Shown: positions 12,281 to 43,800, counted from the first letter of the stretch. The stretch is 64,000 bases of DNA from Thecamonas trahens ATCC 50062 (GCF_000142905.1 NW_013657660.1:396056-460055), one strand, 5' to 3'. Made by a program: numbers and translations. Notes: generated from the sequence alone by a model not told the origin.

Positions 12281-14905
12281 ATGGGCCGGAGAAGAGGACG
12301 AAAGTCGCACTCACCCATACACCCCTCCGCATCTGTTCCTACGGCTGCACGCCCTGCTACTTCGATGCCGACTGCTCCCACGTCGCCGACGCCTGCACCG
12401 CCATCGCCGAGGTCAGCAACACCACCATCGGCAGCGGCAGAGCCATCGCTGGAAAACTCGTTTGGGCTCAAGGCCAAGGTTGCATCGCTGGTGGCAACTG
12501 GCATGACCTTTGCGCTCATCCAGCTCTCCACCTCGGCATCGTCGCTGGTCAAATGGCTCCTCTCACTGCTGTGGAATGACGTCCTTCTCCCGCCGCTCAC
12601 CAGGCTCGCCGACACATACATTGTCGCCTGGTTCACATCACTCTCTGAGGCTCAGATCTTCACGGCGCTCGGGGTCATCACCGTGCTCGGAAGCATTGGC
12701 CTCGCAATCACGTATTACTTGGCCGAAGTTGTGGCCGCGATGCTGGCCTCGCTGGTAGCGCTTCCTCTCTGTGCAGTGGCACTCGCCTGGCGGCTGCCGC
12801 TGCCGTACGGATGGGCGCAAAGCCTTGCTGGGCTCCATCCCTTGGCGGCGACATCGTCCATGCTTCTTCTACCCAGCGTATTGATTGCGGTCCCGCGGCT
12901 TGATCGACCGGTCCAGCTAGCGGTGGCTCTCTGGGCCGCGCTCGCGGTCTTGCCGTGGCCGTTCATGCTGCAGGCGGTGCTCCCAGCAGAGATTGTTGGG
13001 GCAGTCATGTCACACCTCTCGTATCCGTTCCCATGTGTTGCGGCCGGTGGCGGTCGGGCGCTGTGCCGGTTTGTGTCGGATCCTGCCTCGCCACTGCACC
13101 TCAACGTTATTGCCAACGCCCCGCTCCCGCTCGGCGACCTCCTTGCCCGGATGGATGCACCGCAGCTCGCCGCTTCGCGCAATGTGACGCTTGCAGTTGT
13201 TCATCTCGGTCCACTGGCTCTTGCACACTGGTCGCGCCTCGTCCCGCTCCTCATAGCCTCTGCTGTTCTCCTTCTACTCTCGCAGCGAGTGCAGCGGCAC
13301 GCTTCTACCGCCGTGATGAGCGCAATGTGCCTCATGATTGTCGTCTGCGGTGCGCTCATGCTCTCATCGCTCACCGGTGTTACTACTGGTCCACCTGTTG
13401 CCCTTGCGCAGCAGCTTGAGTGTTCACAAGCGGTGGCGGTTCTACGCGAGACGCATCGCGTGCCGGAGGCGTTCTGGGCCATCCCCAACGCAGGAAACTA
13501 CACTGGAAACGCGCTGGCAACGTCGCGCGAGTCACGATGGTACGGGCGATCGCTGGCCCATGGCCGCGGGACCGTGACGCTGGCACTCCCTCACGTTGCT
13601 CCTCACCTCATTGTCGCGCTGCGAGGCGAGTGGGAGACCGGGCGGCTTGTCTATGGCCGTGTGGAGCTCAACTGGACAATGAGCTGCAACGAGACCGAGA
13701 CACTTCGCACCCAAGCGATCGCTGCGGTCCTTGATGAGGCCTTGGACGCGCTTGGCTCACTCTGGACGCCGGAGCGCGGGCGAGTCTTCAGCTTTGGCGC
13801 TGACGGGCCTGCCGCGTCGTCGCGACCGCCGGCGTTCTTTACGCAAGCGCTCCCGGCATCGCTGCCGAGCCTTGCGTGCGAGGCCAGTAGCGAGTGGACG
13901 AGCGGGAGACTGAATATCATGCTCACGGCGGCTGTCGCTAACGGGCGTGTGAGCGTGTCGAGTGGCCGTGGCGCTTCGCCTCTCTCCATCACGCTGCGCT
14001 CGGATGGTCCGGGATGGCGACTGGGTGGTCTGATCTCTGCGCCCATGGGTGATGTGGTGGCGTGGCATTTGGCGCTGCCGAGCGGTGGCGGTGAGCTGGA
14101 GTATGAGGGCGGGTTTGGAGTCGATGGGCCGGCCGGTGAAGGCTTTGTTGCTCTCCATGCTTTTGACGAGGGTGGCGGTCACATTCCAGGCTTTGCCTTT
14201 GTTCTCGATCCGCCACGGATTGCCTCCGAGTTTGCGCGGACAAGCGCAAGGCCTAACCGGTACGCCGACCGGATTCCGCTGGCGGACAGCCCGACGTCGG
14301 CCACTGGCGACGGGCGGGCGGTGCTCGAGGTCCACCATCTTCAGTTTGTGGGTCTCTTTGCCGAGGCGCTTCCGCTGCTGCGGTACGACGCCTACGGCGC
14401 GGCAGGACTCGAGGGGTGGCGGGCAGTGGTGCACCGTGGATGGCTCCGGCTCGGCTCGCCGCTCTGGCTAGCGCCGCTGATGGAGAGCCTACCCGCCGGC
14501 GAGTTTGCAGGGTTCTCTGCCAACACGATTGTGTCGGCTGGCGGCAATGTGACGTGTGCACTGGCCAAAGACTCGGCTCTTGGGTGCGGCGGCGGCGTCG
14601 TGGTGGCTGCCGACGATGGGTACGTGTTCCGTGGGCGGATCAAGGGCTCGCAGACACACGGTGCCGGCGTGCTCTCCCATCCACGGTCTGAAGATGCGGC
14701 GTACGGGTACTGGAATGCTGGACTTCGCAACGGGCAGTTTGTGTTGTACGACCCGGTCCGTGGCCGCTGGGAGTCGGTCCGCTACCGCTCCGGCGTCGTC
14801 CTCTCGTCGAAATCGGTGAAGCGATCAGGGTCAACAGCATCACACGAGGAGCAGATCGTTGAAGCGTTTGTGGCGCGAGTCCTTGCTGATGCAGGAAGCG
14901 CCTGA
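12281..14905 (+). CDS. Hypothetical multi-pass membrane protein with C-terminal MORN-like repeats
   Basis: ATG at 12281 (MGRRRGRKS), several hydrophobic helices, then YEGGFGVDGPAGEG, FRGRIKGSQTHGAG and YGYWNAGLRNGQF, which resemble MORN repeats. Confidence 0.7.
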   Translation: MGRRRGRKSHSPIHPSASVPTAARPATSMPTAPTSPTPAPPSPRSATPPSAAAEPSLENSFGLKAKVASLVATGMTFALIQLSTSASSLVKWLLSLLWNDVLLPPLTRLADTYIVAWFTSLSEAQIFTALGVITVLGSIGLAITYYLAEVVAAMLASLVALPLCAVALAWRLPLPYGWAQSLAGLHPLAATSSMLLLPSVLIAVPRLDRPVQLAVALWAALAVLPWPFMLQAVLPAEIVGAVMSHLSYPFPCVAAGGGRALCRFVSDPASPLHLNVIANAPLPLGDLLARMDAPQLAASRNVTLAVVHLGPLALAHWSRLVPLLIASAVLLLLSQRVQRHASTAVMSAMCLMIVVCGALMLSSLTGVTTGPPVALAQQLECSQAVAVLRETHRVPEAFWAIPNAGNYTGNALATSRESRWYGRSLAHGRGTVTLALPHVAPHLIVALRGEWETGRLVYGRVELNWTMSCNETETLRTQAIAAVLDEALDALGSLWTPERGRVFSFGADGPAASSRPPAFFTQALPASLPSLACEASSEWTSGRLNIMLTAAVANGRVSVSSGRGASPLSITLRSDGPGWRLGGLISAPMGDVVAWHLALPSGGGELEYEGGFGVDGPAGEGFVALHAFDEGGGHIPGFAFVLDPPRIASEFARTSARPNRYADRIPLADSPTSATGDGRAVLEVHHLQFVGLFAEALPLLRYDAYGAAGLEGWRAVVHRGWLRLGSPLWLAPLMESLPAGEFAGFSANTIVSAGGNVTCALAKDSALGCGGGVVVAADDGYVFRGRIKGSQTHGAGVLSHPRSEDAAYGYWNAGLRNGQFVLYDPVRGRWESVRYRSGVVLSSKSVKRSGSTASHEEQIVEAFVARVLADAGSA

Positions 14906-14964: not shown

Positions 14965-16052
14965 TCATCTCCGCATGGGCAAGAGAACACCATGAATGTT
15001 TGGAATGACGCCTCCGCCTGCCAAGCAGACCTTGTGGAACATGCGCTCAAGCTCCATGTCGTTGCCGATGGCAAGTTTGACGTGGCGAGCGGTAAGGCGA
15101 CCAGCTTTGGTGTCGCGCATGGCATTGATGGCCAACTCGAGGACCTCACTCACCACAAACTCGACGGCGGCGGCGACTGCCGGCAGCGTCTCACGGTTGT
15201 AGATCGGGGCGAGGAGCTCCTGCGACTCGAAGACCTGCTTGACGTGGGAAAGATGGAGAAGGACTGGGACGCCTGAGCCAGCGGCGAGCGAGCTTAGTGT
15301 GCGTGCCACATCAGCTGCCGCATACTTGGCCACCTCGCCCGGGAAGTGCAGCTTGATGGCCGAGACGACGTCGTCGGCAATGAACGCAGAACGCTTGTTC
15401 ATCTTGGCCAACGGCACCATTTCCCGATACAAGCTGGCAATGATGTCGTCAATGAGATCAGCGAGCAGAGCAGCGGCTCCCTTGGACAGTGAGACTCTAG
15501 TGGGCGCGCTTGTCTCGGCAGCTGTGGCTCCTCCGGCCCCGGCCTGCGCTGTGGTTACCTTCTTGACCAGAGCACGCAAGCTCTTAATCCACGCTGCTGG
15601 CCTGTCGGCCGACTTGAAGACGCCGCCCGAGGCCTCGGCCACCCTGCGGGCTTCTGCCAGCGCTTCGACCTCCTCGGCGGTGTAGATGCCGTCGACAGAG
15701 CCCAGAACTGGAGCCACAAACGCCAGATCGTCGTCGTCCGGCCCGTCGCCTACGTCAGAGGCCGAGTCGCTCACTGCCCCTTCGTCGCCACCAGACGCCG
15801 ATGCCCCAGCCTGCGGGGAAAAAAAGCTTGAGATCCCAGTTTGCGCAGCCTGCCATTGTCCGTGTCCGTCCGCCGGGTGGCGCCTCCGTGAGTATGTCGT
15901 CGCGGGCAGGAGTAGACCTTCCATTGGCCAGTACGTGCGTGACGAGAGGGCACAGGGAAGGGAGGCAAGAAAAGAACGTTGATGCCCGTCACGCCCCCCT
16001 CCTCCCCCTCTCCCCCTTCCCCCCCTTCTCCTCCCCTAATTTGACTTACCAT
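14965..16052 (-). CDS. Single-chain histone H2B-H2A doublet; ATG-only exon 16050-16052, predicted intron 15850-16049
   Basis: H2B fold: SLSKGAAALLADLIDDIIASLYREMVPLAKMNKRSAFIADDVVSAIKLHFPGEVAKYA. It is followed in frame by an H2A fold and docking domain: AAAVEFVVSEVLELAINAMRDTKAGRLTARHVKLAIGNDMELERMF.KVCLAGGGVIPNIHGVLLP. Start context GCCATG|GTAAGT gives both a Kozak and a splice donor. Confidence 0.9.
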
Positions 16053-19720: not shown

Positions 19721-19986
19721 AATGGCTTGTGGTTCACAGTGTCGTCCTCGTCGGCTGCCCTTGGCGAGACGAGACCGTCGTTTACGGCTTTGATGGGGTG
19801 TCTACCGCCCGCTTCGTGGTATGTGTAGCTGGCGTAGGGTGTGAACTATCTGTTGATGCGCAGGACTGGCTTGAGAACGGCTTGGATCCCATCATACACT
19901 GCAAAATGCCGTTTGTATCACCCCCCCCCCCCCCCCCCCTCCCCAGCTCTAACCCCCCCACCTCTCGCCACGCCAAAGCCACGCCC

Positions 19987-22125
19987 ATGCCGGCAACCAC
20001 AGCAGCAGTTCTGCTGGTGCTACTACTTGTTGCAGCGCCTGCAGTGACGGAGGCACGATTCGCTTTCGTCGTCCTCCACTACGAGGGCACTCCCGCCGAC
20101 GATGCGTACGTGCTTGGCACGCAGGTGACCATAGCCACGGTGCTGGAGCAGCACCCGGACCCGGCCATTGATGTGGTGGTACTGGCGGTCCACGGCGTGC
20201 GGCCCGAGGTCAAAGCCCGGTTTGCGGCGACCGATCCGAGGCGAGTGGTGGTGAGGGAGGTGCCGGACATCGGCAATCCGTTTGGCCACGCCAAGCCACG
20301 CTTCCGCAAGTCGCTCAACAAGCTGCACGCCTGGGCGCTGGTCGACTACGAGCGGGTCGTCTTTCTCGACTCGGACACGGTTGCGCTCCACGACATGTCG
20401 GCCCTCTTCCGCTGCGGTCACTTTTGCGTTGTCTACCTCAATCCGACCCGATTCCACACTGCGCTCATGGTCATCAAGCCCGACGTTACCGTCTTTAGCG
20501 ACATGCGCGCCGCCCTGCGCCGTTCACCGTCGGATCCAAACGCGCCGGCCTCGCACGACGGTGCCGACCAGGGCTTTCTCAACTGGTACTTTGCCCACGC
20601 ACGCGCCGGCCCGCTATTTGACGTCTACCTTGGCGGACCTGACGGCGGCGAGCGCTTCGAGCACCCGGCCATGCGGCTCACCATCGCCCACGCCATGCAC
20701 CACATCTACTTTTACGAGCACGGGACGTGGGACGGCTACCGCGTGGCAGGTGCACACCCTGAGGTAATTGCCGCCGATCCGCCGGCGCTCTCCATCTCCT
20801 TTCCCGGCCCGACGTGGACCAAGCCGTGGGACTGGCGCGGCTACCTGTTCTTTGTTGGTAACTGGCTCTGGGCCGATGCTCGTGCCCGGCTCCCTTCCGA
20901 CTTGGTATCACCGCCGCAAATTGCTAGTGCAGCGCTGGCCTACGTCGTGATTCCGGCGGCGCTTACGGGAGTCTTCTACGCTCTCGCCCCGGCGCATGGC
21001 GGCACCGGACTGAGCCCGGCCAGCGGCCGCGGTCTCGTCCTTGCCGGCACCGCCGTCACCGCCACGACGTACGGCGTGTACGTAGCTGCCGAGCTGGTCT
21101 CCCCATTTGCCCATCCCTACGCTGGCTTTGCCATTGTCCTCTCCACTGAGATGGTTGCTCAGCACGCCATCCGTCTTGTGGGCGTGTGGATGCTGACGGG
21201 GCATCCGCCGCGGGCTGTGCGCTCACCGCTGTGGCCCACCGTCCTCGCCCTCGCGGCGCGCCTTGCGGTCATCGGCATCGGTGCGTGTCTCTTTCACTTT
21301 GTGCTTAAGGTCCTGCTGCTTGGCGCAGGTATCCTCGCCTCGCTTGCGCTCTCGATAGCGTCGTGGGGCGTGGTCCGCGTTTCCTCGGCACCGGAAGCTC
21401 GCCCGCGCTGCGACGCGGCCAGCCCGCGCCCGTGGGGCTCGTTTCCGGCGTTTCTGACAGGCTTTGCCGTCTTTTGTGTTGGCTCGCTTGTCAACGTCAC
21501 GGGCATGTCGGTAGCCGAGCTGGCTGTCGACCTCGCGCGGCCGCCGCTTGTCGACGTTGTCCACGCACGCTGGCCTGATGCGCAGACTGGAGCCATCGGC
21601 GAGGTCCTTCTCCTCGCCGCCATTGTCACGCCTGTGTTCGTCGGAGTCGTTTACAACAGATTTGCAGATGGGTTTACCATTCTCGGTCGGGTATTTGCCA
21701 GCGTCGGCGCCGTGTACGTTGTCCGCGGAGTGGCCGTGGGCGTCACCGACATTCCGGTGCCGAACAACCACTGCCGCGCATGGGACGGGTGGCGGAGCGA
21801 CGACGACACCCATTGGTCGAACATAGCCGTCGGCCTGAGAACGCTCGGCACAGATCCGCACTGTGGTGATCTGATCCTCTCTGGCCACACCATCGTCGTC
21901 GTAGTCGCCACCGCTGTCATGGTCTCATACTACGCGCGGCTGGTGCCGACAACAACGCTAGCGTCATGCGCGCTTGCACTGGTGGCGAGCGCCTCATTTG
22001 TCCTCTCGCACAACCACTATACTGTCGACGTGTGGCTGGCAGCGGTTGTCACCACTCTGGTGTGGCACTCGCTCCCAGCGGTCTGGCCCTGGCCGGTCGG
22101 CGGCATGTTTCCTTCTTGCTCTTGA
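19987..22125 (+). CDS. Fusion protein: signal peptide + GT8 glycosyltransferase (PGSIP7/8-like, related to IPUT1) + TM block + IPC/sphingomyelin synthase (PAP2_C) domain
   Basis: GT8 motifs: HYEGTP.D, LNKLHAWALVDYERVVFLDSD (DxD), FRCGHFC..YLNP..FHT, DGADQGFLN, FPG..W.KPW.W. SMS/IPCS motifs: PPLVDVVH, R...VT.IPVPN.HC, CGDLILSGHT, HNHYTVDV. One uninterrupted ORF. Confidence 0.9.
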   Translation: MPATTAAVLLVLLLVAAPAVTEARFAFVVLHYEGTPADDAYVLGTQVTIATVLEQHPDPAIDVVVLAVHGVRPEVKARFAATDPRRVVVREVPDIGNPFGHAKPRFRKSLNKLHAWALVDYERVVFLDSDTVALHDMSALFRCGHFCVVYLNPTRFHTALMVIKPDVTVFSDMRAALRRSPSDPNAPASHDGADQGFLNWYFAHARAGPLFDVYLGGPDGGERFEHPAMRLTIAHAMHHIYFYEHGTWDGYRVAGAHPEVIAADPPALSISFPGPTWTKPWDWRGYLFFVGNWLWADARARLPSDLVSPPQIASAALAYVVIPAALTGVFYALAPAHGGTGLSPASGRGLVLAGTAVTATTYGVYVAAELVSPFAHPYAGFAIVLSTEMVAQHAIRLVGVWMLTGHPPRAVRSPLWPTVLALAARLAVIGIGACLFHFVLKVLLLGAGILASLALSIASWGVVRVSSAPEARPRCDAASPRPWGSFPAFLTGFAVFCVGSLVNVTGMSVAELAVDLARPPLVDVVHARWPDAQTGAIGEVLLLAAIVTPVFVGVVYNRFADGFTILGRVFASVGAVYVVRGVAVGVTDIPVPNNHCRAWDGWRSDDDTHWSNIAVGLRTLGTDPHCGDLILSGHTIVVVVATAVMVSYYARLVPTTTLASCALALVASASFVLSHNHYTVDVWLAAVVTTLVWHSLPAVWPWPVGGMFPSCS

Positions 22126-23095
22126 CCTCGGCCAGCTCCTTGGCCAGCCTCTCGGCCCGCGGATCGGCGACACCGGCTCCCGCCATCGCGTCAACCGCAG
22201 CCGCAACAATGTTGTGCGTCCAGATAACGTTGGCTCCAAGGAGCAGCGCCAGCAAAGCGAGTGCAACATATCCAACGTGGTGATCAAAGCCGGCTTGCAG
22301 ACACCCGAGTGATACACTGTACCGTTCGCTCACTACGTCTTTGAGCGCAAACACATCAAAGGCATCGGCGTCCCAGAACAAGACACCAAACGAGAGCAAG
22401 TGACCCAGCACAATAAACGCCGGGAAGATGACCATGCGAGTCACCATCCATACCGAGACAAAGGCACCAAACAGGAGGTGCACCAACCACGCCGGCACAA
22501 CCTCGAGGTACCGCACCACAATGGTGGCGTCCAGGATTGGATCGGCGGCGGCGTGGAGGAGCAGAACAAACACGCCATGGACAGACATGTGCGCCGCCGT
22601 ACTGAGAACAACCAGCACAAGTGTCACAGCATGATGCGCCACCATCAGCCCCCAGTCCCACTCGAGCGTATTGCCGACCAAAGCGTCTGTCCCCATGCCG
22701 CCCAGCTCGCTCGAGAACCACACCATCGCCGCCAGCAGTGCCGGGTCAACATCAACAGTTCGACTAGTCTCGTTCCGCCGCAGCGCGTCCGCGCACCGCG
22801 CCGACTCTACGTCCCACACACCAAATACAGAAGCATCAACAGCGGCGGCGACACTCTCCGTCGGCACCAGCGCAGCCTCAGCCCACAGCCGACGCGCACT
22901 GGAGAGCGCCAGCACCAGGACCACCATCGAGCCCAGCCACATCCAGCTGTGCCTCGCTACTGCCAGCTGCCGCGACCTGCGTTCCACCCCGCCATACTCG
23001 GCCCAGCGACGCAAGCCTGCCACCGCCACCGCCCGCACCGCCACCCCTCCCGCCGCCCCTGCCGCCCACCACACTGCCGCTTCGTCGACTCGCAT
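22049..23095 (-). CDS. Lag1/TLC-domain ceramide synthase-like protein
   Basis: Lag1p-like motif DWGLMVAHHAVTLVLVVLS.....VHGVFVLLLHAAADPILD, then F..F..VW..TRM..FP, L..L...NVIW...I and C-terminal DPRAE (cf. DxRSD). First ATG at 23095; the frame is open upstream to 23182. Confidence 0.8.
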   Translation of the reverse strand: MRVDEAAVWWAAGAAGGVAVRAVAVAGLRRWAEYGGVERRSRQLAVARHSWMWLGSMVVLVLALSSARRLWAEAALVPTESVAAAVDASVFGVWDVESARCADALRRNETSRTVDVDPALLAAMVWFSSELGGMGTDALVGNTLEWDWGLMVAHHAVTLVLVVLSTAAHMSVHGVFVLLLHAAADPILDATIVVRYLEVVPAWLVHLLFGAFVSVWMVTRMVIFPAFIVLGHLLSFGVLFWDADAFDVFALKDVVSERYSVSLGCLQAGFDHHVGYVALALLALLLGANVIWTHNIVAAAVDAMAGAGVADPRAERLAKELAEVKSKKETCRRPARARPLGASATPEW

Positions 23096-23231
23096 CCGCC
23101 TTGTGTCCACCGTCTCGTTCGATCGCGCCGTCGCCTTGACTTGGTCACGGACGAGGAACTCCGCCTGTAGGCGTTCCAGCACAGATGCTCGGCCGGGCCG
23201 AGGTCTTTGACCACACCTGCAAGAGAGTGGG

Positions 23232-23414: not shown

Positions 23415-26400
23415 TCACACCACGCTATCCAACCCGCCGCCACCACCGCTCTCTATCATCTCGGCAGAACCCAGCATCGATCGCTCGCTCAGGATCGGGC
23501 TCTGACTGGTGCCCAGCGGGCCCGATCCGACATAGCTCACTGTGGCCTGCGACGCAAGCGGCGTTCCTACGTCGCTCATCAGGTTGTCGAGGTGAACGTC
23601 GTTGGTCATGGTGGTCAGGTCTTCGCGGGCAAGGTCAGGATCAAGGCCGGCCATGTCGGCGTCAAACCCGGCCTCAGCCCGCTTCTCGCGGCGCGCGATG
23701 AGCCAAAAGTCGGCCATCACGCCGCCAATGATGAGCGCAACATTGCTGACGATGCCGATATGAATGCCGGCGCTCCGCAGCCCGCCGTCATCAAAGGTGC
23801 CCGAGTACAGCACTAGCGTCGTTGCCGCAAGAACCGCCACAGAGAGTCCGTTGTGGAGTGGCGAGCCGTACGGCCTCTGAAAGATGAGCTGTCCAAGAGC
23901 AGAGACAAGAACAACTACACCAGCGTTGGCCTTGCTCTTATCAGTAAAAAACAGCGCCATGCAGAGGACGACTCCAAGTTTGCGCGCCATGATCGCCGTC
24001 TCAAACCACCACGCTGTCGGCACAAATCGGCCGACTAGAAAGCCGAACTTGATCGTAAACGTGAGTTCGTCTCCCAGCACCTCCCGCTGCCGGCGTAGGA
24101 CCAGCCAGACTACCGCAGGCACACCGATGGCGTAGCACAACACTGCCGCCATGGCCACCGGAAACAGCCCCACCCACCATGCGCTGTTGTAGCAGCTCCG
24201 CGCCGGATCGGCATCGAGCACCCACCGCCCACCCACCTCGCGGCGACACCCAAACGGCGCCATGGCCGCCCGCGCCAGTGGCAGATACAGCAGCACCAGC
24301 AGCTGGAACAGCGTCCGCCCGCACCCGCCCATCAGCTGCGCCAAGTTATCTGCCCGCCGCAGTTTGCCAGGCAGCAGCATCAGCGGCGCTACAGCCACCA
24401 CAGCTGCAGCCGCAAAGACAGGCAGTGCAAGAGTGAGGCCCCACTTGAGCGCCCATGTGTCGGTCCCGGCCGCGGCCGCGCACTCGGGGCTGGTCAGCTC
24501 AAAATCGACGTTGACCGCGCTCGCCACGTCAAAGTACACTTGCGCCAGTCCGCCCCACGCAAGATCGAGCTTGCCGTACATTGCGCTGATCTGCAGCGCG
24601 TTGAGCCCGATCATCGCCGCGGCAAACTTGTACCGCAGGCTCTGGGCAAGGTTGAACATCAGCAGCGCAGCCGTGATCACCAGCAGTCCAACAACCAGAC
24701 ACGCCACAATCGCAGCATTGCGCCCAGCTGCACACTTGCGGCAGCTCGACCCGAGTCGGTAGTAGTTGGGGGCGCATTGGGCGCACAGCCGCGCCGTGTA
24801 ACCCGGTGCGCACTGCCCGTCGAGCAAGCAAGCCGATGCCGTCGGGCATGCCACAAACAGCGTCGGGTCTGTCTCGTCCGGAAAGAAGCCCGGTCCCGAG
24901 ACAGGCTGAGCACTCCCACCGGTGCACACACCGCCGCTAGGACACGGCAAGCAGCCGTCCGCACCGATGACTCCGTCCTGGACCCAAAAGTTGCGCTCGC
25001 ACGAGCACGCGCCCATCGCGTCGCCGCCGAGCCGCACTGCGTTGGCTGGACAGGCCGACAACGCCACGCACTGTGCCAGCGGCCCGGCGCTTTGCTGCGT
25101 CCCCTCACCACACTCGGCACAGACGACAACGCTCGTCGCAGACCCGCTCCCAGCCACTGTGCCCGATCCGGCCCGACATCCGGTGATGTTGACTGTAGCG
25201 CGAAGCGCCGGCACTGCCAGCCCACGGCTGCTCACGCCACCAGCCTCAATCATGGTGTGCGCCGTGAGCGGAATCAGGCTCGCTCCGCCGCCGTCGCCAA
25301 TTGCGCTTGCCACAATCTGGACGGTCAGGTCCGGCAGCGAGACCGCCGTCGACTCGAGCGCCATCGAGCTCGACCCGACCGTGGCCAGGGCGGGATCGGC
25401 CTCATACCGCATCCGCAGCACAATTCGCGGCTCAACCAGCGGCTGGCCGAGCCAATCCACCCCGCGCACTGCGCCAGACGCCGACAAGCCCGGCTCGAGC
25501 GATCCGCTCGGCCCACTCGCCCACGCCATCGACGCTAGTGGCCCGGCCATCACCGCCGTCCCAAGCGTGCCAAACGCTGCAGCGTCGGCACGCAACCACG
25601 GCAGCTTGGCTCGGTCGCTGCGCCCAACCTGGGAGAGGGCAACGCCTGCGCCAGCGCACAAAAACACGTCATTTGCCCGCCGATCCGCGCCACTCACGCC
25701 GCCACTCATCAGCGTCCCAGAGCCTACAAGACTCACCCGCGCCCCGCACACCAGAGCATTGCCGCCGAGGTAGTTGGCCTCCGACATCTCAAGCCGCACA
25801 TCCACTAGCACAATCGTCGGCGGAGCAGGCCCGCTCAGCGGTCCTTCACCGCTGGCGACAGGAACCTCGACTGAGGTCTGGGCCGATGCAAGCTCGACGT
25901 GAAGGTCCGCGGCAACCACCGCAAGCCCGCCACCCGAGCCGCCGGCGCTGTTGCGGCGAATGCTTGTGCCGTCCAGCTGGACTGTTGCGGGCGCCACAAT
26001 CAAGACTCCGCCACCGAGCCCAGCCAGCGCCACAGTGTTGTCCTCGATCGTCGTCGCGCCACGGAGCGTCAGGCTCGCGCCGTTTGCCGCATACAGCCCG
26101 CCGCCGCCGTTGATCGCGGTCGAGCTGGTGATGAGCGAGTCTGCCACAAGTAGCGACGCACCGGTGGCAACCGTCACGCTCCCGCCGAGATTGCCTGCCT
26201 CGTTGTCACGAAACGTGCACGCCTCGAGCGTTGCAGACGATCCCACACCACGCACGTGAAGCGCACCGCCCGAGCTCGCTGAGCTCGCCTTGAACGTCGA
26301 CCGGCGCGCCTCGAGTGACGCCCCGCTCAGCACCAAGACAGCGCCGCCGCGTCCAACAGAAAAGTCCGACTCGTCGGTCCGCGGCGCGGCCGAACATCCC

Positions 26401-29258
26401 TCAAACGTCATGCCGTCAAGGACCAAGCGCGCACCCGAGCCGCCAACTCTTACACCCGGCCCACCAATGAGCGACGTCCGTGCCACACCTGTACCACGCA
26501 CCGTCATGTTGGCGAGGACAAGCTCGCCGATCGACATCCCGGAGGCATCCGGTCCGACGTGGAACAAGACCCCAGCGCTGCCGCACTCAAACACCGTTCC
26601 GGCACTTCCTGCAATCGTCATGGCATTCGAGACAAGGGCGTGCGAGTCTCGCGAGCAGTTGTACTGCGCCGGTGGCAAGTTGACCGTGTCATGGGTGCAG
26701 CGCGATGTGGTGCGGAGACTTGCGCGCACGCACTCGAATGAGCCGCGGCTTCCTGTCTCGCACGCCTTGTCACGAGTCCGGAGGCCACGATGCGTCGGCG
26801 CAAAGACGTGCATTGGCCCGCGAAGCAGGCGTGCCACCCAACCAAACTGGCCGAGCGATCCCGAGCTGGTAATCACGTCAATGTCGCCGTCACCGTCAAC
26901 GTCATCGAGCGAGGCAAAGGTCGTCATTGATGCCGACGCCAGAGTAAGAACTGCACCAAAAGTGCCACTGCCCGAGTTGAGCGCCATGTCGACGTCAGAG
27001 TTGGACATGATCGCAACAAGATCGACATGGCCATCGCCGTCCATGTCTCCGAGCGAGAGCTGGATGGCACCCGCAGCCTTGAGCGTAGCCACTGCCGTCG
27101 GCGTGTTGAACGTGCCGGGCACGCCACCCTGGGTGATGCGCTTGACTACAGTCGAGCTAGTGTCCATGACGAGGATGTCGTTCCGACCATCACTATCGAT
27201 ATCGTCGACCAAAAGCTGCTCGGTCAGACCCGTCGGCGCGTAGATGACAGCGCTCGCGGCAAAGCTCCTACCCGAAGGAAACTCGTTCTCGAACCAGGTG
27301 AGCTCGTCGGTCATGGTGTCGATGACAACCAAATCCGGCGCGCCATCGGAGTTGATATCGCGTAGAACCACAACATCCGCGCCGACGCCCAGTACCGAGG
27401 TAGGCAACGGGAAACTGCCATCTCCGGCATTGAGCGCCCAGACCAAGGTGTCAGACTGGCTCACAGCCACAAAGTCGCGCGCTCCGTCACCGTTGACGTC
27501 GACAACGTCAAAGTGGGCATATGGCGGCGACGGGGTGGTGACCACCGGCTGGCGGGGGCCAAATCGTCCAACGCCGTTGTTGGCCGCCCACACTGGGCCG
27601 CTCGAGACCCATGCAACAACATCGGTGTCACCGTCGCCGTCCATGTCCACAGCCTTGATGTAGCGGACAGCCTGGGCGTCGAAAACTGGCTGGGCCGGGC
27701 CGAAGTTGCCGGCGCCGTCAAAGTTGGCGAACCAGAGTGCGCCAGAACTGGTGCCAACAACAACATCGACGAAGCCATCGGCATTGATGTCGGCGGGCGC
27801 ATGCTCAAAGCTGTCAAGCATGCCACTTGCTGCCACATGCACGGTGGCGCTCGGCGCGACCGCGCTCGAAGTGGGCCACCGCTGCAAGACAGTGTCGTCG
27901 AGCGAGACAAAGTCGAGGCTCGGGCCACTTGCGTAGTTGCCGGCGCAGACATGAAGGAAGCCCAAGCCGAGTGTGCCGACTACCAAGCGCGGGCCAAATC
28001 GCCCACCACCATCGACGTTTTCATGCCAGACCACGTCCTTGGTCTCGACGTGGGTGAGCGCAATGTCGAGGTCGCCGTCGGCGTCGATGTCGGCGAGGGT
28101 GAGGTCGCCAGGAGAGTCGACGGCGGCCTCGATGGCCCGCGGCGGGTAAAACCCTCCTGCACCATCGGAACTTTGGAGCCAGCCAAAGGCTGACTGCCAT
28201 GAAAAGGCAAAGACAAGGTCGATCATGCCGTCGCCGTTGACATCGCCGGCGCGGACATGGCTCGACGAAAAGACCGAGCCGGCGCCGAGCGAGACCAGGT
28301 TGGCCGGAACTCCGCTCGTCCCGTCTTTCATCCATGTCAGCGTGCCGTCGGCGACATCGCTCCATAGAATGTCATTGATCGCGTTGCCGTCGATGTCGAC
28401 AATCAAGACCGATTGCAGGTACGAGCCATAGGTGGTGATGGTGGCGGCAGAAGCAAACGAACCTGCGCCGTCGGTGTTCTCCATCCAGAACATCAGGTGG
28501 CGGGAATCGTGGGTAGTCACCACGATGTCGTCGTCGCCGTCCGAGTCGACGTCACCGACTGCCACTTCATCGAGATCAAACTCCGAGGTCGAGTGGACGT
28601 TGACGCCGGCGGTAAAGCTCGGGCCTGCGGTCTGGCGGAACCAAAGAACCTCGTCGAGGGTGGCTACCGCAACATCAACGAGCGAGTCGCTGGAGAGCTT
28701 CCCGATCGCCACACCGACAATGTTGGCGATACCAGTGCCAACGGTGACAGAAGAGAAGCCGCCGACACCGTTTCCGCGGAACAGCTGCACATCGCTGCTA
28801 CCACGCCGCGCGACGACAACGTCGTCGACGGCGTCGCTGTCCACTCGGCCGCAGATCACGCCCCTTCCAGACGAAACGGCTACGATGGGCACCGGCGAGA
28901 GCGGCACCTCGGGCTTGCACTGCGGAATGTTTGGTCTACCCAGAACCGGGTCCAGTAGCACATCGACCGTCGCCGCTTGCGTGCCGAGCGGCTCCACCAC
29001 CAATGTCACCACCGCTGCCGCCAGCAACGCCCATACCGCCAGCCGGCGCCAGCCGTCATTGCAACGCCCAGCGCCCCGAATCAGCCTCCCACTGTTCGCT
29101 TCCCAGCCCATCACTCGCCTGCATGGGTCAGCTCCTGCGCCACTGCCCGTCATAGTCTGCACTCGGACCCTGGCCCGCTTCAAGTGAAGTGTACCAGAAT
29201 TGCCGCTCGTTGCGCCTGCTCCCATTTCGTGCCGCATTTCGTCAAATCTTACCCGCAC
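23415..29258 (-). CDS. Giant adhesion-receptor-like protein: FG-GAP/VCBS repeats, GGA-type beta-helix repeats, Cys-rich repeats, C-terminal ~7TM domain (paralogue A)
   Basis: Hydrophobic signal; many D(V/I)(D/N)GDG.D motifs; F..N.A...GG repeats; C..C..G Cys-rich units; hydrophobic helices with LYLP, C...W and FLVGRF...WWFE...M.RK. True ATG is uncertain (29237, 29153 or 29111). Confidence 0.88.
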   Translation of the reverse strand: MRVRFDEMRHEMGAGATSGNSGTLHLKRARVRVQTMTGSGAGADPCRRVMGWEANSGRLIRGAGRCNDGWRRLAVWALLAAAVVTLVVEPLGTQAATVDVLLDPVLGRPNIPQCKPEVPLSPVPIVAVSSGRGVICGRVDSDAVDDVVVARRGSSDVQLFRGNGVGGFSSVTVGTGIANIVGVAIGKLSSDSLVDVAVATLDEVLWFRQTAGPSFTAGVNVHSTSEFDLDEVAVGDVDSDGDDDIVVTTHDSRHLMFWMENTDGAGSFASAATITTYGSYLQSVLIVDIDGNAINDILWSDVADGTLTWMKDGTSGVPANLVSLGAGSVFSSSHVRAGDVNGDGMIDLVFAFSWQSAFGWLQSSDGAGGFYPPRAIEAAVDSPGDLTLADIDADGDLDIALTHVETKDVVWHENVDGGGRFGPRLVVGTLGLGFLHVCAGNYASGPSLDFVSLDDTVLQRWPTSSAVAPSATVHVAASGMLDSFEHAPADINADGFVDVVVGTSSGALWFANFDGAGNFGPAQPVFDAQAVRYIKAVDMDGDGDTDVVAWVSSGPVWAANNGVGRFGPRQPVVTTPSPPYAHFDVVDVNGDGARDFVAVSQSDTLVWALNAGDGSFPLPTSVLGVGADVVVLRDINSDGAPDLVVIDTMTDELTWFENEFPSGRSFAASAVIYAPTGLTEQLLVDDIDSDGRNDILVMDTSSTVVKRITQGGVPGTFNTPTAVATLKAAGAIQLSLGDMDGDGHVDLVAIMSNSDVDMALNSGSGTFGAVLTLASASMTTFASLDDVDGDGDIDVITSSGSLGQFGWVARLLRGPMHVFAPTHRGLRTRDKACETGSRGSFECVRASLRTTSRCTHDTVNLPPAQYNCSRDSHALVSNAMTIAGSAGTVFECGSAGVLFHVGPDASGMSIGELVLANMTVRGTGVARTSLIGGPGVRVGGSGARLVLDGMTFEGCSAAPRTDESDFSVGRGGAVLVLSGASLEARRSTFKASSASSGGALHVRGVGSSATLEACTFRDNEAGNLGGSVTVATGASLLVADSLITSSTAINGGGGLYAANGASLTLRGATTIEDNTVALAGLGGGVLIVAPATVQLDGTSIRRNSAGGSGGGLAVVAADLHVELASAQTSVEVPVASGEGPLSGPAPPTIVLVDVRLEMSEANYLGGNALVCGARVSLVGSGTLMSGGVSGADRRANDVFLCAGAGVALSQVGRSDRAKLPWLRADAAAFGTLGTAVMAGPLASMAWASGPSGSLEPGLSASGAVRGVDWLGQPLVEPRIVLRMRYEADPALATVGSSSMALESTAVSLPDLTVQIVASAIGDGGGASLIPLTAHTMIEAGGVSSRGLAVPALRATVNITGCRAGSGTVAGSGSATSVVVCAECGEGTQQSAGPLAQCVALSACPANAVRLGGDAMGACSCERNFWVQDGVIGADGCLPCPSGGVCTGGSAQPVSGPGFFPDETDPTLFVACPTASACLLDGQCAPGYTARLCAQCAPNYYRLGSSCRKCAAGRNAAIVACLVVGLLVITAALLMFNLAQSLRYKFAAAMIGLNALQISAMYGKLDLAWGGLAQVYFDVASAVNVDFELTSPECAAAAGTDTWALKWGLTLALPVFAAAAVVAVAPLMLLPGKLRRADNLAQLMGGCGRTLFQLLVLLYLPLARAAMAPFGCRREVGGRWVLDADPARSCYNSAWWVGLFPVAMAAVLCYAIGVPAVVWLVLRRQREVLGDELTFTIKFGFLVGRFVPTAWWFETAIMARKLGVVLCMALFFTDKSKANAGVVVLVSALGQLIFQRPYGSPLHNGLSVAVLAATTLVLYSGTFDDGGLRSAGIHIGIVSNVALIIGGVMADFWLIARREKRAEAGFDADMAGLDPDLAREDLTTMTNDVHLDNLMSDVGTPLASQATVSYVGSGPLGTSQSPILSERSMLGSAEMIESGGGGGLDSVV

Positions 29259-39759: not shown

Positions 39760-40611
39760 CCCCTCACACTCTGTCCGCAATGTACAAAGTCGGGTGTCTC
39801 GTCCCACTCCCACACTCCGCCCTTCTTCCCTCCCCTCCCTTTCCTCCCTCCTGCCTGCCTCTGCCCGTCGCCCTCCCCGCCAACTTTGCGCGCGAAACCC
39901 AAATGGCGCCATTTTTGGCCGGCCGTCGTCCAATCGATCGTCCCATGGATCGACCACTCTCACCTCCCATGCACCTCCTCGGCCACCTTTCAGGGCGCCA
40001 CTTGTCCATTTAGATACAGATCGGACCGCAATCGAAGAACGAGATGGGAGATATTATGTAATAATACGCAGGCAAGGCATGAGCTTGACTCGTCGTCGTC
40101 GCTGTGGTGGGGGGGGTGTAGAGTGCAATGCTCACATCAATGCGATCGCCTTTTCTGGCGACGTCTGTCCGTGCAACCTGCTCACAATCCGAGTCCCCCC
40201 CCCCCCCCCCCCCCCGCCCTCTATGCGTCCACCCCCTATACATCCAAAAGATGTCACAGCCATTGTCCCGATCCCTCTCATCCCCGTTCACAGTTTTATC
40301 ATTCTCTGCGCTCCCCAACCGCTCCTGGCCACCTTTGCTGACCTTGATCAACACCGGGACGGACCCCATCGTTTGCCACAAGTTGATTGGCGCGTGCCTG
40401 CACGCCTCAATTCCCCGCGCTCTCCTCGTCGACCTAACTCACACGCGCGCTTGCCTCTCGTTCCGCGTCGTACGACTCCTCTTGGGCCTCCCCCCCCCCC
40501 TCGTGCCCCCCCCCCTTTCCCTCCCCCCCGTTTAGAGTGATTTCTCTCCGCTTCTTTACAAGAGCGTTACGTTTCCCCCTGGCGCCGCGACTCTACGATT
40601 AAGGAGTTTAC

Positions 40612-40711
40612 NNNNNNNNNNNNNNNNNNNNNNNNNNNNNNNNNNNNNNNNNNNNNNNNNNNNNNNNNNNNNNNNNNNNNNNNNNNNNNNNNNNNNNNNN
40701 NNNNNNNNNNN
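40612..40711. other. Assembly gap (100 N)
   Basis: N run. Confidence 1.
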
Positions 40712-40844
40712 GACGCTTCCCCCCTCCTCTCTCTCTCCCCCCTTTCCTCGTCTTTTCCCTTCTCATCCTTTCCATAGGTCTTTGCCACGCTCCGCAAGGC
40801 CTCTTCTATCTCCTTCCCTTCCTTCTTCTTGCTCGCCTCTCGTC

Positions 40845-43800
40845 ATGGCGGCTGGCTCTGGCTGTCTGGCTACAACCTCACTGCCGGTGATGGTCATGGT
40901 CATGATGGTACTCTTCCTTAACGTTTTCCGACAAACGGAAGGAGCTTCGTCAACTGCTCCCTGTCCGCCCTTTGTCACCGCTGCTAATCGCTATGGTTCC
41001 ACCTACGTTAACAAATGGTCGGCTCGGGCTGCCTTTAACTCGGTCTGGGAGGACGTTGATGTCGATCAAGATGGTCTGGTGGAGAACTACTACGTCGTCG
41101 GATCGATGTGGACAGAGTTTGCGTCAACCTCATTCCTTCCGGCTTGGGTCTCATCCGACTGCACCTCTATCGCCACAGTGAGTTCGTTGCACTTTGATCT
41201 CACCACGCAAGGTACCGCTATCGGTACCAACAGCATCACCCACTCGGTCGTCGACAAAGACCTGACCGGAGACGGCTTTCCTGACGCCGTCATCTCGACC
41301 GCCAACGGTGTTCATCTGGTGCCCAACTCGGCGCTCTCCTCGCCGTACTGGGTCGCCAACGACACTGTGGCTGCCTCCAACATCTGGACCGCAGCCAGTT
41401 CTACCGGCACCATCCACGTGCTGGAGGACATGGATCTCGATGGCGATCTGGACATGGTGTTCTGGCACTACTCTTCGAGTGCCGATGCGACGTGGTACCC
41501 CAACATGGGCAACGGCACGTTCTCGGTCAACCCGATCATCATCCATGCCACACCCGGCTCGTACTACTGCTACGGACCAGCGTTTGGCGACTTTACCGGC
41601 GACGGGATTCGTGATTTTGCGGCCGGACGGACTGATCATCGAGTGGTGCTGATTGCGGCGAATGGAGCGGGCATCATTTCCGACGCCATCACGACGCCGG
41701 TTCTGATCTCGTACTCGAGCGTGTACACGCCCGGAAACGTGGGGATCGGCGATTTTGATGGCGACGGTGACAGTGATCTCGCTATCTTGTTCCATGGCAC
41801 TCGGGCATGGGGCTTTACGGCAGTGCGCAACGTGGCGACCGGCCCGGGGCCGTTTGTGGCCGGGGCGACCGAGTGGTTCAAGCGCGACTGCCGAGACTGC
41901 CGTGGGCTGGCCACATACGACGTGGACGGCGACGGACGGATGGACGCGTTGTATTCGTCGGTGCGGTACGACCAGTTCTTCTACACGCGGTGGGACGGAA
42001 CCGAATTTACGACACACACGATCGGGTCGGGTGTTGAGGCGTACTTTATCAAGTTTGTTGACATCGACAAGGACGGCAAGATTGATGTGCTGGCGGGTGA
42101 CGGATTCCGGCTCCGAATCTACGGGTTTGACTCGATCACCAGCTTCCCGCTGTGGTACAATCAGGAGATCCGATACGGACAGCGGAGCGCCGGGCGTGGG
42201 CAGTTTGACGTGGTGGACGTGGATGGCGACACGTGGATGGATGTCGTCTCACCAGGCTCGAACGGGATCTACATCATGTACAATGCTGGGCCTGCAAGCG
42301 CGCGGCCTGGAGCGGACGAGCTGTTCCCGCGGTCCAAGATGGTGCGAGCGATGGGCGATCCCGTGGTGACGTCGTGGGGCGTGGCGTCTGTGATCGGCGA
42401 CATCAACGGCGATGGGATGTTTGAGATCCTTGGGTTTACGGGCACGGCGGCACCGTACTCGATGGTGGCTGTGCGGCCTGCCACGAACGACGGGTACGCA
42501 CCGAACCAGTATGTGGCACCCGGCAGCGGGGTGTTTGGGTACAAGAGCGATGCGGCGATTGCACTGTCCGAGGCGTCGTTCACGGCGATGCACGCCATGG
42601 CTGTGGTTGACATTGACTACGACGGCGACTACGATGTGGTGTTCTCGGCACGCAACGGGAGCGAGGCCGGGGCGTTGTGGCTGGCGCGCAACCGGTACGT
42701 GGAGGACGGACTGAGCGGAACGACGAGCACCGTGTTTGACGAGCTGTTGCGACTGGGCTGGGGCCATAGCACGGGTGACTATGTGACCGAGTTTGAGATT
42801 GGCGACCTGAACAACGACGGGCAGCTGGAGATTGTGATGATCTGGTACGACAGTGAGCGGATCGACATTCTCTCGACGTCTGTGCCAGGGTATGGCGGGC
42901 CTGTGATCAACGGGAGCTATGCGACGGGAGGATCCGAGCTCGTGAGCCTGCAGATTGTGGACCTCAACATGGACGGATCGGACGATGTGCTGTTCCTGCG
43001 GAACAGGCGGTATGTGCGTGCGCTGTTTGGACAGGCGCCCGGGGCCGACTACGAGCATTTTCACTACATGACGGAAGTCGAACTGTACGACGCGGGGCGT
43101 GAGACGTATTGGGTGACAGCGGGACAGCTCAACGGACCGGACGATGCGTATGTGGACATTGCAGTTGTTCGGTACAACGATCCTGTAATCTGGCTGGTGG
43201 GCCAGGACGGGAGCGGGACCAACTATGCTGCGCGCAGCGTGGGCGGGATCCCGGCGCTGACCAACAGCCACTACCGAGGCACGCACGCGGTGGCGCACTT
43301 TCGGGACGTGAACGGTGACGGGTACGACGACGTGGAGTTTACGTCTACACAGTACATCTACTACATGCCATCGTACGGGTTCAACGGGGCGTACAACTAC
43401 CACTGGTCGTCATCGTATCTATATTACACATACGGCATGGTTGTGGCGGACGTCAACGGCGACTCACTCCCGGAGATGATCTCGCCGAACCACAACGGGC
43501 CGGTGGCATCGACGTGCACTACACGACGAACCGGTTCACGAGCATCAGCCTACAGCGGACGAGTCTTTCACGCGATGTGGACAACTCGCGGATGATTGAC
43601 TGGAATCTGGATGGGCGGCCTGACCTGTTCTCGCTGACGACGGTGGGCGGAGTGGCGACGGTGAGCTTGCATGTACACAACCCGGCAGCGGTGTGGCAGG
43701 CGTACACAGACGCAGACCGGGAGGAGTTCAATCTGCCCTGGTGCAACCCGATGCGTGATCCTCTGATGCATGATCTGACGGGGTCTGGGCTGGTGGACGT

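Follow-up and report, generated by a model that had tools for sequence, protein, structure and literature searches.

In plants, the genes for the inositol phosphorylceramide synthase (IPCS) and for the family 8 glycosyltransferase (GT8) of the glycosyl inositol phosphorylceramide (GIPC) pathway are separate and unlinked. The two steps take place in the Golgi, where that of the IPCS (ERH1) is followed by that of the GT8 enzyme IPUT1/PGSIP6/MOCA1 (PMC9317492, PMC12971971). Here we describe a pair of genes of Thecamonas trahens ATCC 50062 that encodes the same two families, i.e. IPCS (of the sphingomyelin synthase (SMS)/PAP2_C type) and GT8 with C-terminal membrane helices. Unlike in the plant pathway, the IPCS-family and GT8 parts are found in one polypeptide, and the gene for a ceramide synthase (CerS)-like TLC protein is adjacent. 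The pair is located in a window of 64,000 nt (NW_013657660.1:396056-460055; all positions are counted on the whole window) with a fairly even GC content, and the 28.7-Mb genome is GC-rich (~62%), gene-dense, and intron-poor.

The arrangement resembles eukaryotic metabolic gene clusters, in which pathway genes are linked in relatives and a specialised paralog stands beside them while housekeeping copies reside elsewhere; fungal toxin clusters, for example, can carry a CerS paralog. It differs from these clusters in that two pathway genes are linked at the locus, where three or more define a metabolic gene cluster, in that its product would be a membrane lipid and not a secondary metabolite, and in that nothing suggests a toxin or self-resistance. 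To our knowledge, membrane-lipid pathway genes are almost never clustered in eukaryotes, and a literature search identified no paper on a GT8-SMS fusion or on its linkage to a CerS gene.

The fusion gene (19987-22125, + strand) encodes a protein of 712 amino acids from the ATG at 19987, as supported by the open reading frame (ORF), the Pfam matches, and an ortholog (P0002). This start is the one given in the preliminary description, and an alternative in-frame ATG located 81 nt upstream is possible. The ortholog, which was found in independent metagenome assemblies, shares 52% identity over 95% coverage and has the same architecture. The continuous fusion ORF was recovered from three samples on as many metagenome contigs, which share 97.7% identity with one another, and the fusion is therefore real at the DNA level.

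Over its N-terminal 300 residues, the fusion protein has homology to PGSIP-type GT8 proteins that stand alone (E values of 1e-55 to 3e-29), among which the sole named protein is plant PGSIP8 (3e-29, 32% identity). Homology, AlphaFold2 (AF2) modelling, and Foldseek place a GT8 domain of the PGSIP/IPUT1 type, predicted to be lumenal, at 20050-20886 (+). This domain was modelled with a predicted local distance difference test (pLDDT) score of ~90, and its top Foldseek matches were glycogenin, Skp1 GalT, and LgtC, with target-normalised template modelling (TM) scores of 0.56-0.80. The Pfam GT8 score of 22.0 bits is below the gathering cut-off of 24.3 bits; because homologs with E values of 1e-55 to 1e-39 pass this cut-off, the shortfall reflects sequence divergence. 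The DxD, DQG, and KPW positions are invariant in the alignment with homologs, including both Asp residues of the DxD metal/nucleotide-sugar motif (DSD; 20368-20376, +). The GT8 domain is followed by five membrane helices (residues 309-462; 20911-21372, +) predicted by AF2, hydropathy, and alignment with GT8-only homologs. The helices, at residues 309-336, 347-370, 377-404, 416-434, and 438-462 in the AF2 model, are common to stand-alone PGSIP-type GT8 proteins.

The C-terminal part, separated from the helices by a short linker, is an SMS/IPCS-family six-helix domain (21442-22083, +) identified by Pfam (PAP2_C, 1.5e-17), phmmer, and hydropathy. Its best match among solved structures is human SMSr (residues 149-359; phmmer, 1.2e-8), with the whole six-helix core aligned, and its AF2 model is of low confidence. 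The domain shares with animal SMS1/2, SMSr, and the kinetoplastid sphingolipid synthases a six-helix core, the D3 and D4 motifs, and an intact His-His-Asp triad. The D3 motif is CGDLILSGHT with the catalytic His634 (21862-21891, +), aligned to SMSr and identical in the ortholog, and the D4 motif, likewise aligned to SMSr, is HNHYTVD with the catalytic His677 and Asp681 (22009-22029, +). Unlike the described members of the SMS family, the domain is very divergent and is placed downstream of a GT8 module; when the SMS domain by itself served as the query, a word-based homolog search returned one weak match only, and a scan of JGI metagenomes with the SMS-domain alignment returned no match. Scans of viral contigs yielded two distant SMS-like matches and no TLC relative, and nothing pointing to a viral origin was found. 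These two IMG/VR contig segments (L030:8001-8177 and L031:8001-8447) are SMS-family-like, share 24-34% identity with the C-terminal domain of the fusion protein, and have no TLC or GT8 gene within 8 kb.

The SMS-type core of known members begins with a cytosolic N-terminus. Because an odd number (five) of helices separates the predicted lumenal GT8 domain from this core, the helix counts fit a topology in which both active sites would face the lumen. According to the preliminary description, the locus encodes three consecutive steps of GIPC synthesis. The enzyme families and intact motifs agree with this description, while the IPCS assignment cannot be read from the sequence and the nearest named relative of the GT8 domain is PGSIP8, not IPUT1. 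Phosphoinositol specificity, i.e. IPCS activity, is accordingly proposed solely by analogy, from the fusion to a PGSIP/IPUT1-type GT8 domain.

The gene for the TLC protein lies on the opposite strand. Its ORF extends mechanically to 23182, the end given in the preliminary description, where the start codon is GTG. Because the first ATG lies at 23095 and provides the Met from which the N-terminus of the ortholog aligns, the most likely coding sequence is 22049-23095 (-), encoding a CerS-like TLC acyltransferase of 348 amino acids that is supported by the ORF and Pfam TLC.

The TLC protein matches the Pfam TLC model (PF03798) above the cut-off (1.5e-14), the match covering only model positions 75-197. 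In the PDB, its sequence is best matched by human CerS6 (5e-8), with the alignment running across the Lag1p motif, and its nearest named database matches are animal Hox-TLC proteins. The AF2 model (pLDDT of 81) gave CerS6, Lag1, or Lac1 as all of the top seven Foldseek matches (TM scores of 0.42-0.52), and the Atlas model of the ortholog (P0017) matched a CerS6-like cluster with TM scores of 0.64-0.66. In total, 14 TLC loci were identified in the genome: two canonical CerS genes (HH ... HDxxD), 11 TLCD-like genes (HH ... ExST), and the gene described here, whose pattern (HH ... HAxxD) is that of its ortholog. In a maximum-likelihood tree, the 11 ExST-type paralogs were split from a clade containing the TLC protein, the two canonical paralogs, and the database matches, with a support of 100 in the Shimodaira-Hasegawa-like approximate likelihood ratio test (SH-aLRT); the outgroup of this tree consists of the genome's own ExST paralogs, with no named TLCD, CLN8, or TRAM references included. 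Together, the TLC protein and its ortholog occupy a very long basal branch of the CerS-type clade. A TLCD- or TRAM-like identity, which the preliminary description had considered as the alternative, was rejected by the tree and by the motifs (HxxxD versus ExST), and by tree, motifs, and predicted fold the TLC protein is grouped with the ceramide synthases. Neither a word-based homolog search with the TLC protein nor a JGI metagenome scan with the TLC alignment returned a match.

Like yeast Lag1/Lac1, human CerS1-6, and plant LOH, the TLC protein has a predicted TLC fold with a broken fifth transmembrane helix. It also shares with them the His-His pair and the equivalents of His238, Asp242, Arg275, and Asn315, and its C-terminal DxR(S/A)E is a partial match to theirs. 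Unlike them, it has Ala in place of Asp239, lacks a Hox domain, and has an N-terminal third outside the Pfam TLC match. The Lag1p-type motif region (22505-22660, -) aligns to CerS6 residues 203-253. Within it, the pair equivalent to CerS6 His211/His212 (residues 154-155; 22631-22636, -) is invariant in 55 of 55 CerS-like sequences, and the alignment shows that HAAAD (22541-22555, -; HALAD in the ortholog) retains the His238 and Asp242 equivalents. The C-terminal DPRAE (22151-22165, -; DPRSE in the ortholog) partially matches DxRSDxE, which a reference cited in PMC11838012 gives as the CerS C-terminal motif, and is absent from the 11 TLCD-like paralogs. In CerS6, His211 is the nucleophile that accepts the acyl group and His212 is its partner, Asp242 binds the 3-hydroxyl of the sphingoid base, and Asp239, reported to be essential for activity, is part of the lining of the proposed amino-alcohol pocket (PMC11919693). 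In the 55 CerS-like sequences, the Asp239 column contains D in 46, E in four, and A in three, and is acidic in 50. The identification as a ceramide synthase in the preliminary description thus stands in part: the clade, the fold, and the His-His pair are of the CerS type, and the protein appears to be a CerS-like acyltransferase, whereas it is premature to class it among the bona fide ceramide synthases because the aspartate reported as essential is gone.

Two further explanations of the TLC protein arise from this substitution. The protein may be catalytically dead, serving as a regulatory or scaffolding partner or drifting toward loss, as the missing aspartate, the long branch, and the partial Pfam match would allow. 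We consider this very unlikely, given that two orthologs with an overall identity of only 39-45% both retain the equivalents of His211, His212, His238, Asp242, Arg275, and Asn315, that the ORF is intact in each of them, and that matching contigs occur in RNA libraries. Alternatively, the two genes may be coupled with the TLC enzyme acylating a non-canonical acceptor instead of a free long-chain base; the candidates are a lyso phospho- or glyco-sphingolipid from the fusion enzyme (remodelling or re-acylation), a non-sphingoid amino alcohol, or a lysolipid. TLC-family members are known to acylate lysophospholipids, namely TLCD1 acting on lysophosphatidylethanolamine and CLN8 acting on lysophosphatidylglycerol and glycerophosphoglycerol (PMC11838012, PMC13661276), and the pocket-lining Asp239 is the residue replaced in both orthologs while the other catalytic residues are kept. 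This explanation is disfavoured by the retention of the Asp242 equivalent, by the grouping of the protein with CerS and not with the lysolipid-acylating TLCD type, and by a sister protein (P0019) that keeps Asp at position 239, and we regard it as rather unlikely.

When 1.84 billion representative sequences were scanned in full with HMMER, a single close relative of the TLC protein was returned, and the gene for this relative adjoins the only other GT8-SMS fusion found (marine metagenome; L017/L018/L019). The linkage proposed in the preliminary description therefore recurs in the only relative found. The genes of the relative are arranged head-to-head, with ~95 bp between the start codons, whereas those in the window are arranged tail-to-tail; by our reasoning, switching between the two arrangements needs at least two rearrangements, yet the adjacency has persisted. 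Next in closeness is the TLC protein P0019, whose grouping with the two orthologs is weak (SH-aLRT of 74) and whose only match in the T. trahens genome is the TLC gene of the window. At the P0019 locus, on contigs from several samples (L032/L038), the gene order is LicD, TLC, a 300-aa gene of unknown function, and a stand-alone PAP2_C gene. The controls were three further CerS-like genes and two homologs with a GT8 domain only (P0005 and P0006, on long contigs); no PAP2_C or TLC partner was found within 8-10 kb of them, nor any other lipid gene next to P0005 and P0006.

Neutral adjacency would explain the pair differently: the TLC gene would be a third, fast-evolving CerS paralog, and the relative would have kept the neighbourhood by neutral synteny. 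The exact pair is known from two organisms only, the flanks are too short for background synteny to be assessed, and with 14 TLC loci in one genome some chance neighbourhoods are expected. With a gene total of ~11-12 thousand, extrapolated from the gene density of the window, the chance of one TLC/PAP2_C adjacency is ~1-2% for the 14 TLC and six PAP2_C loci of the genome and ~0.2% when the three CerS-type and four intact SMS-type genes are counted, and an adjacency by chance is unlikely. In addition, order and orientation have changed between the lineages and the genes are still adjacent; both genes are near-absent from very large databases, yet co-occur; and in a third lineage the gene for the sister TLC protein is linked to one of the SMS family, whereas the three control CerS-like loci show no such link. 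We therefore judge neutral adjacency to be unlikely, albeit not negligible. The shared rarity, the rearranged yet adjacent genes, the third lineage, and the control loci favour functional coupling, although the sample is small.

Separate CerS and SMS-like genes, for which the preliminary description had recommended a search, were found elsewhere in the genome, as was a stand-alone GT8 gene. In total, these comprise two CerS genes of the canonical type, three SMS-like genes that stand alone and have intact motifs, and one PGSIP-like GT8 gene, likewise stand-alone; all are on other contigs, and none shares a contig with a partner family. Among the six PAP2_C loci of the genome, four are intact SMS-type genes. 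The presence of canonical copies elsewhere supports the view that the pair is free for a specialised role. One locus of the UDP-sugar dehydrogenase family (Pfam PF00984) is present and is a candidate source of UDP-glucuronate. No GT64 gene of the GINT1/GMT1 type was detected in the genome in a search that had no positive control.

The coding ends of the two convergent genes share 77 bp (22049-22125), as the ORFs confirm, i.e. the last 25 codons of each gene. The preliminary description regarded this overlap as physically interlocking a module. This part of the proposal was not upheld, and a role of the overlap as a regulatory interlock was rejected, because the overlap is missing from the head-to-head arrangement of the relative. 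On the fusion side, the overlapping codons include a conserved stretch at the end of the last membrane helix. On the TLC side, they encode an unconserved tail: the ortholog alignment stops 33 residues short of the stop codon, and the model is largely unstructured there. The window contains three further pairs of long ORFs that are likely to be convergent, at 14905/14965, 33976/34010, and 49062/49123, with stop codons 59, 33, and 60 bp apart, respectively. Because these stops are also only a few dozen bp apart, the overlap appears to be the extreme of a compact genome and is best read as a by-product of tight packing and an unconserved C-terminal extension of the TLC protein, lying outside any mechanism. 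As the overlap is accounted for by compactness, it is compatible with neutral adjacency. Judging by the close convergent stops, it is probably routine in this genome for transcripts from opposite strands to overlap at their 3' ends.

Four metatranscriptomes from seawater and the subsurface contained short, near-identical contigs (0-1 mismatches) covering 21686-22048 of the fusion gene and 22222-22502 and 22732-22882 of the TLC gene. The contigs of the two genes come from different runs and are unquantified, and they provide weak evidence that both genes are transcribed. An apparent RNA joint from 22737 to 23019, with a 21-nt side and 68 foreign letters, was rejected as spurious. A high RNA depth at 19912-19944 was likewise discounted as low-complexity cross-matching to a proline-run stretch just upstream of the ATG at 19987. 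This segment attracts many unrelated metatranscriptome contigs with poly-T loose ends.

We consider it slightly better than an even chance that the two genes are a co-inherited pair, functionally coupled in a branch of complex sphingolipid synthesis specific to this lineage. The direct observations behind this reading are the identities of the domains, the intactness of their catalytic motifs, the clade in which the TLC protein is placed, and the shared rarity and conserved adjacency of the two genes; from these we infer the substrates, a GIPC product, the compartment, and the coupling. The TLC protein would be an acyl-CoA-dependent N-acyltransferase of the ceramide synthase type with an altered long-chain-base pocket (Asp239 to Ala), which may supply a particular dedicated ceramide or something closely analogous. 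The product of the fusion gene would be a bifunctional Golgi-type enzyme whose SMS-family domain moves a phospho-head group, most likely phosphoinositol, onto this ceramide; the GT8 domain, held on the same lumenal side via the five helices, would then glycosylate the head group.

Several points weigh against functional coupling of this kind. Both TLC orthologs have Ala at the position of Asp239, where a CerS would carry both aspartates; because this residue is reported to be essential and is acidic in 50 of 55 sequences, ceramide synthesis by the TLC protein itself is doubtful. Neither the head-group nor the sugar specificity can be read from the sequence, and the nearest named GT8 protein is PGSIP8, not IPUT1. 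The fusion-TLC pair is found in one independent relative only, on contigs of ~4 kb that are too short for background synteny; the flanks of L017, L018, and L019, which extend only 0.1-0.6 kb and are partly microsatellite, showed no similarity to the window. The RNA contigs are short, may stem from DNA carry-over, and none spans the overlap or the domain junction of the fusion. Known CerS enzymes act in the endoplasmic reticulum and IPCS and IPUT1 in the Golgi, and adjacency need not mean direct coupling.

A bolder reading combines several steps and, taken jointly, seems to us improbable, if still worth setting out. It holds that a small, basal CerS-like subclade, comprising the TLC gene of the window, its marine relative, and the P0019 lineage, has remained linked in the genome to SMS-family head-group transferases from a time before these lineages split, which would make it an old eukaryotic sphingolipid gene cluster. 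The GT8 fusion would have compacted this cluster into a three-activity assembly line in the T. trahens lineage. The change from Asp239 to Ala would mark a new acceptor, for example in the re-acylation of a lyso-phosphoinositol sphingolipid, and PGSIP7/8-type enzymes would act on the products of SMS-family enzymes.

The pair stands alone at its locus, since the flanking genes, among them those for a histone doublet, a kinesin-like protein, and an FG-GAP protein, have no lipid function. The ORF at 14965-15924 (-) encodes 319 amino acids, matches Pfam models of the histone fold and the H2A C-terminus close to its own C-terminal end, and fits a histone doublet. The gene directly upstream of the TLC gene (23415-29258, -) encodes a protein of 1947 amino acids that contains nine FG-GAP-like repeats, a beta-helix region, and DUF7630, and the stop codon of this gene is only ~320 bp from the TLC ATG. 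In the genome as a whole, the TLC family is unusually large, with 11 TLCD-like (ExST-type) and three CerS-type genes. Three of the 14 TLC loci lie within 40 kb of one another on contig C57 (26855-27424, 40370-41030, and 64752-65270; L008, L002, and L022, respectively). The second of these (L002) is a canonical CerS gene whose Pfam match is in two pieces, 40370-40792 and 40782-41030, which overlap by 11 nt; each piece is in its own open frame, so that a frameshift, a short intron, or an assembly error may be involved. In the marine contigs that carry P0019 or P0114 (L032:2-3899 and L038:309-4551; GC content of ~55%), a LicD-family gene, a small ORF, the CerS-like TLC gene, the gene for the 300-aa protein, which has a hydrophobic N-terminus, and the PAP2_C gene form a compact run that may be a further type of gene cluster for sphingolipids or phospho-head groups. 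Another protist contig (L035:8001-12786) contains two TLC-domain genes (291 and 430 aa) located 2.6 kb apart with two genes between them.

If the coupling is true, this conserved pair of a CerS-like gene and an SMS-family gene with a fused GT8 domain would be a rare natural guide to cooperating enzymes. The biochemical function of PGSIP7/8-type GT8 proteins in plants is still unknown (PMC12971971), and the fusion gives a direct hypothesis for their acceptor. TLC proteins other than CerS are being reassigned as lysolipid acyltransferases (PMC11838012), and the TLC protein described here, as a natural Asp239 variant of the CerS active site, may be informative on acceptor selection. If the proposed pathway is correct, plant-like glycosyl-phospho-sphingolipids would extend to a heterotrophic marine protist.

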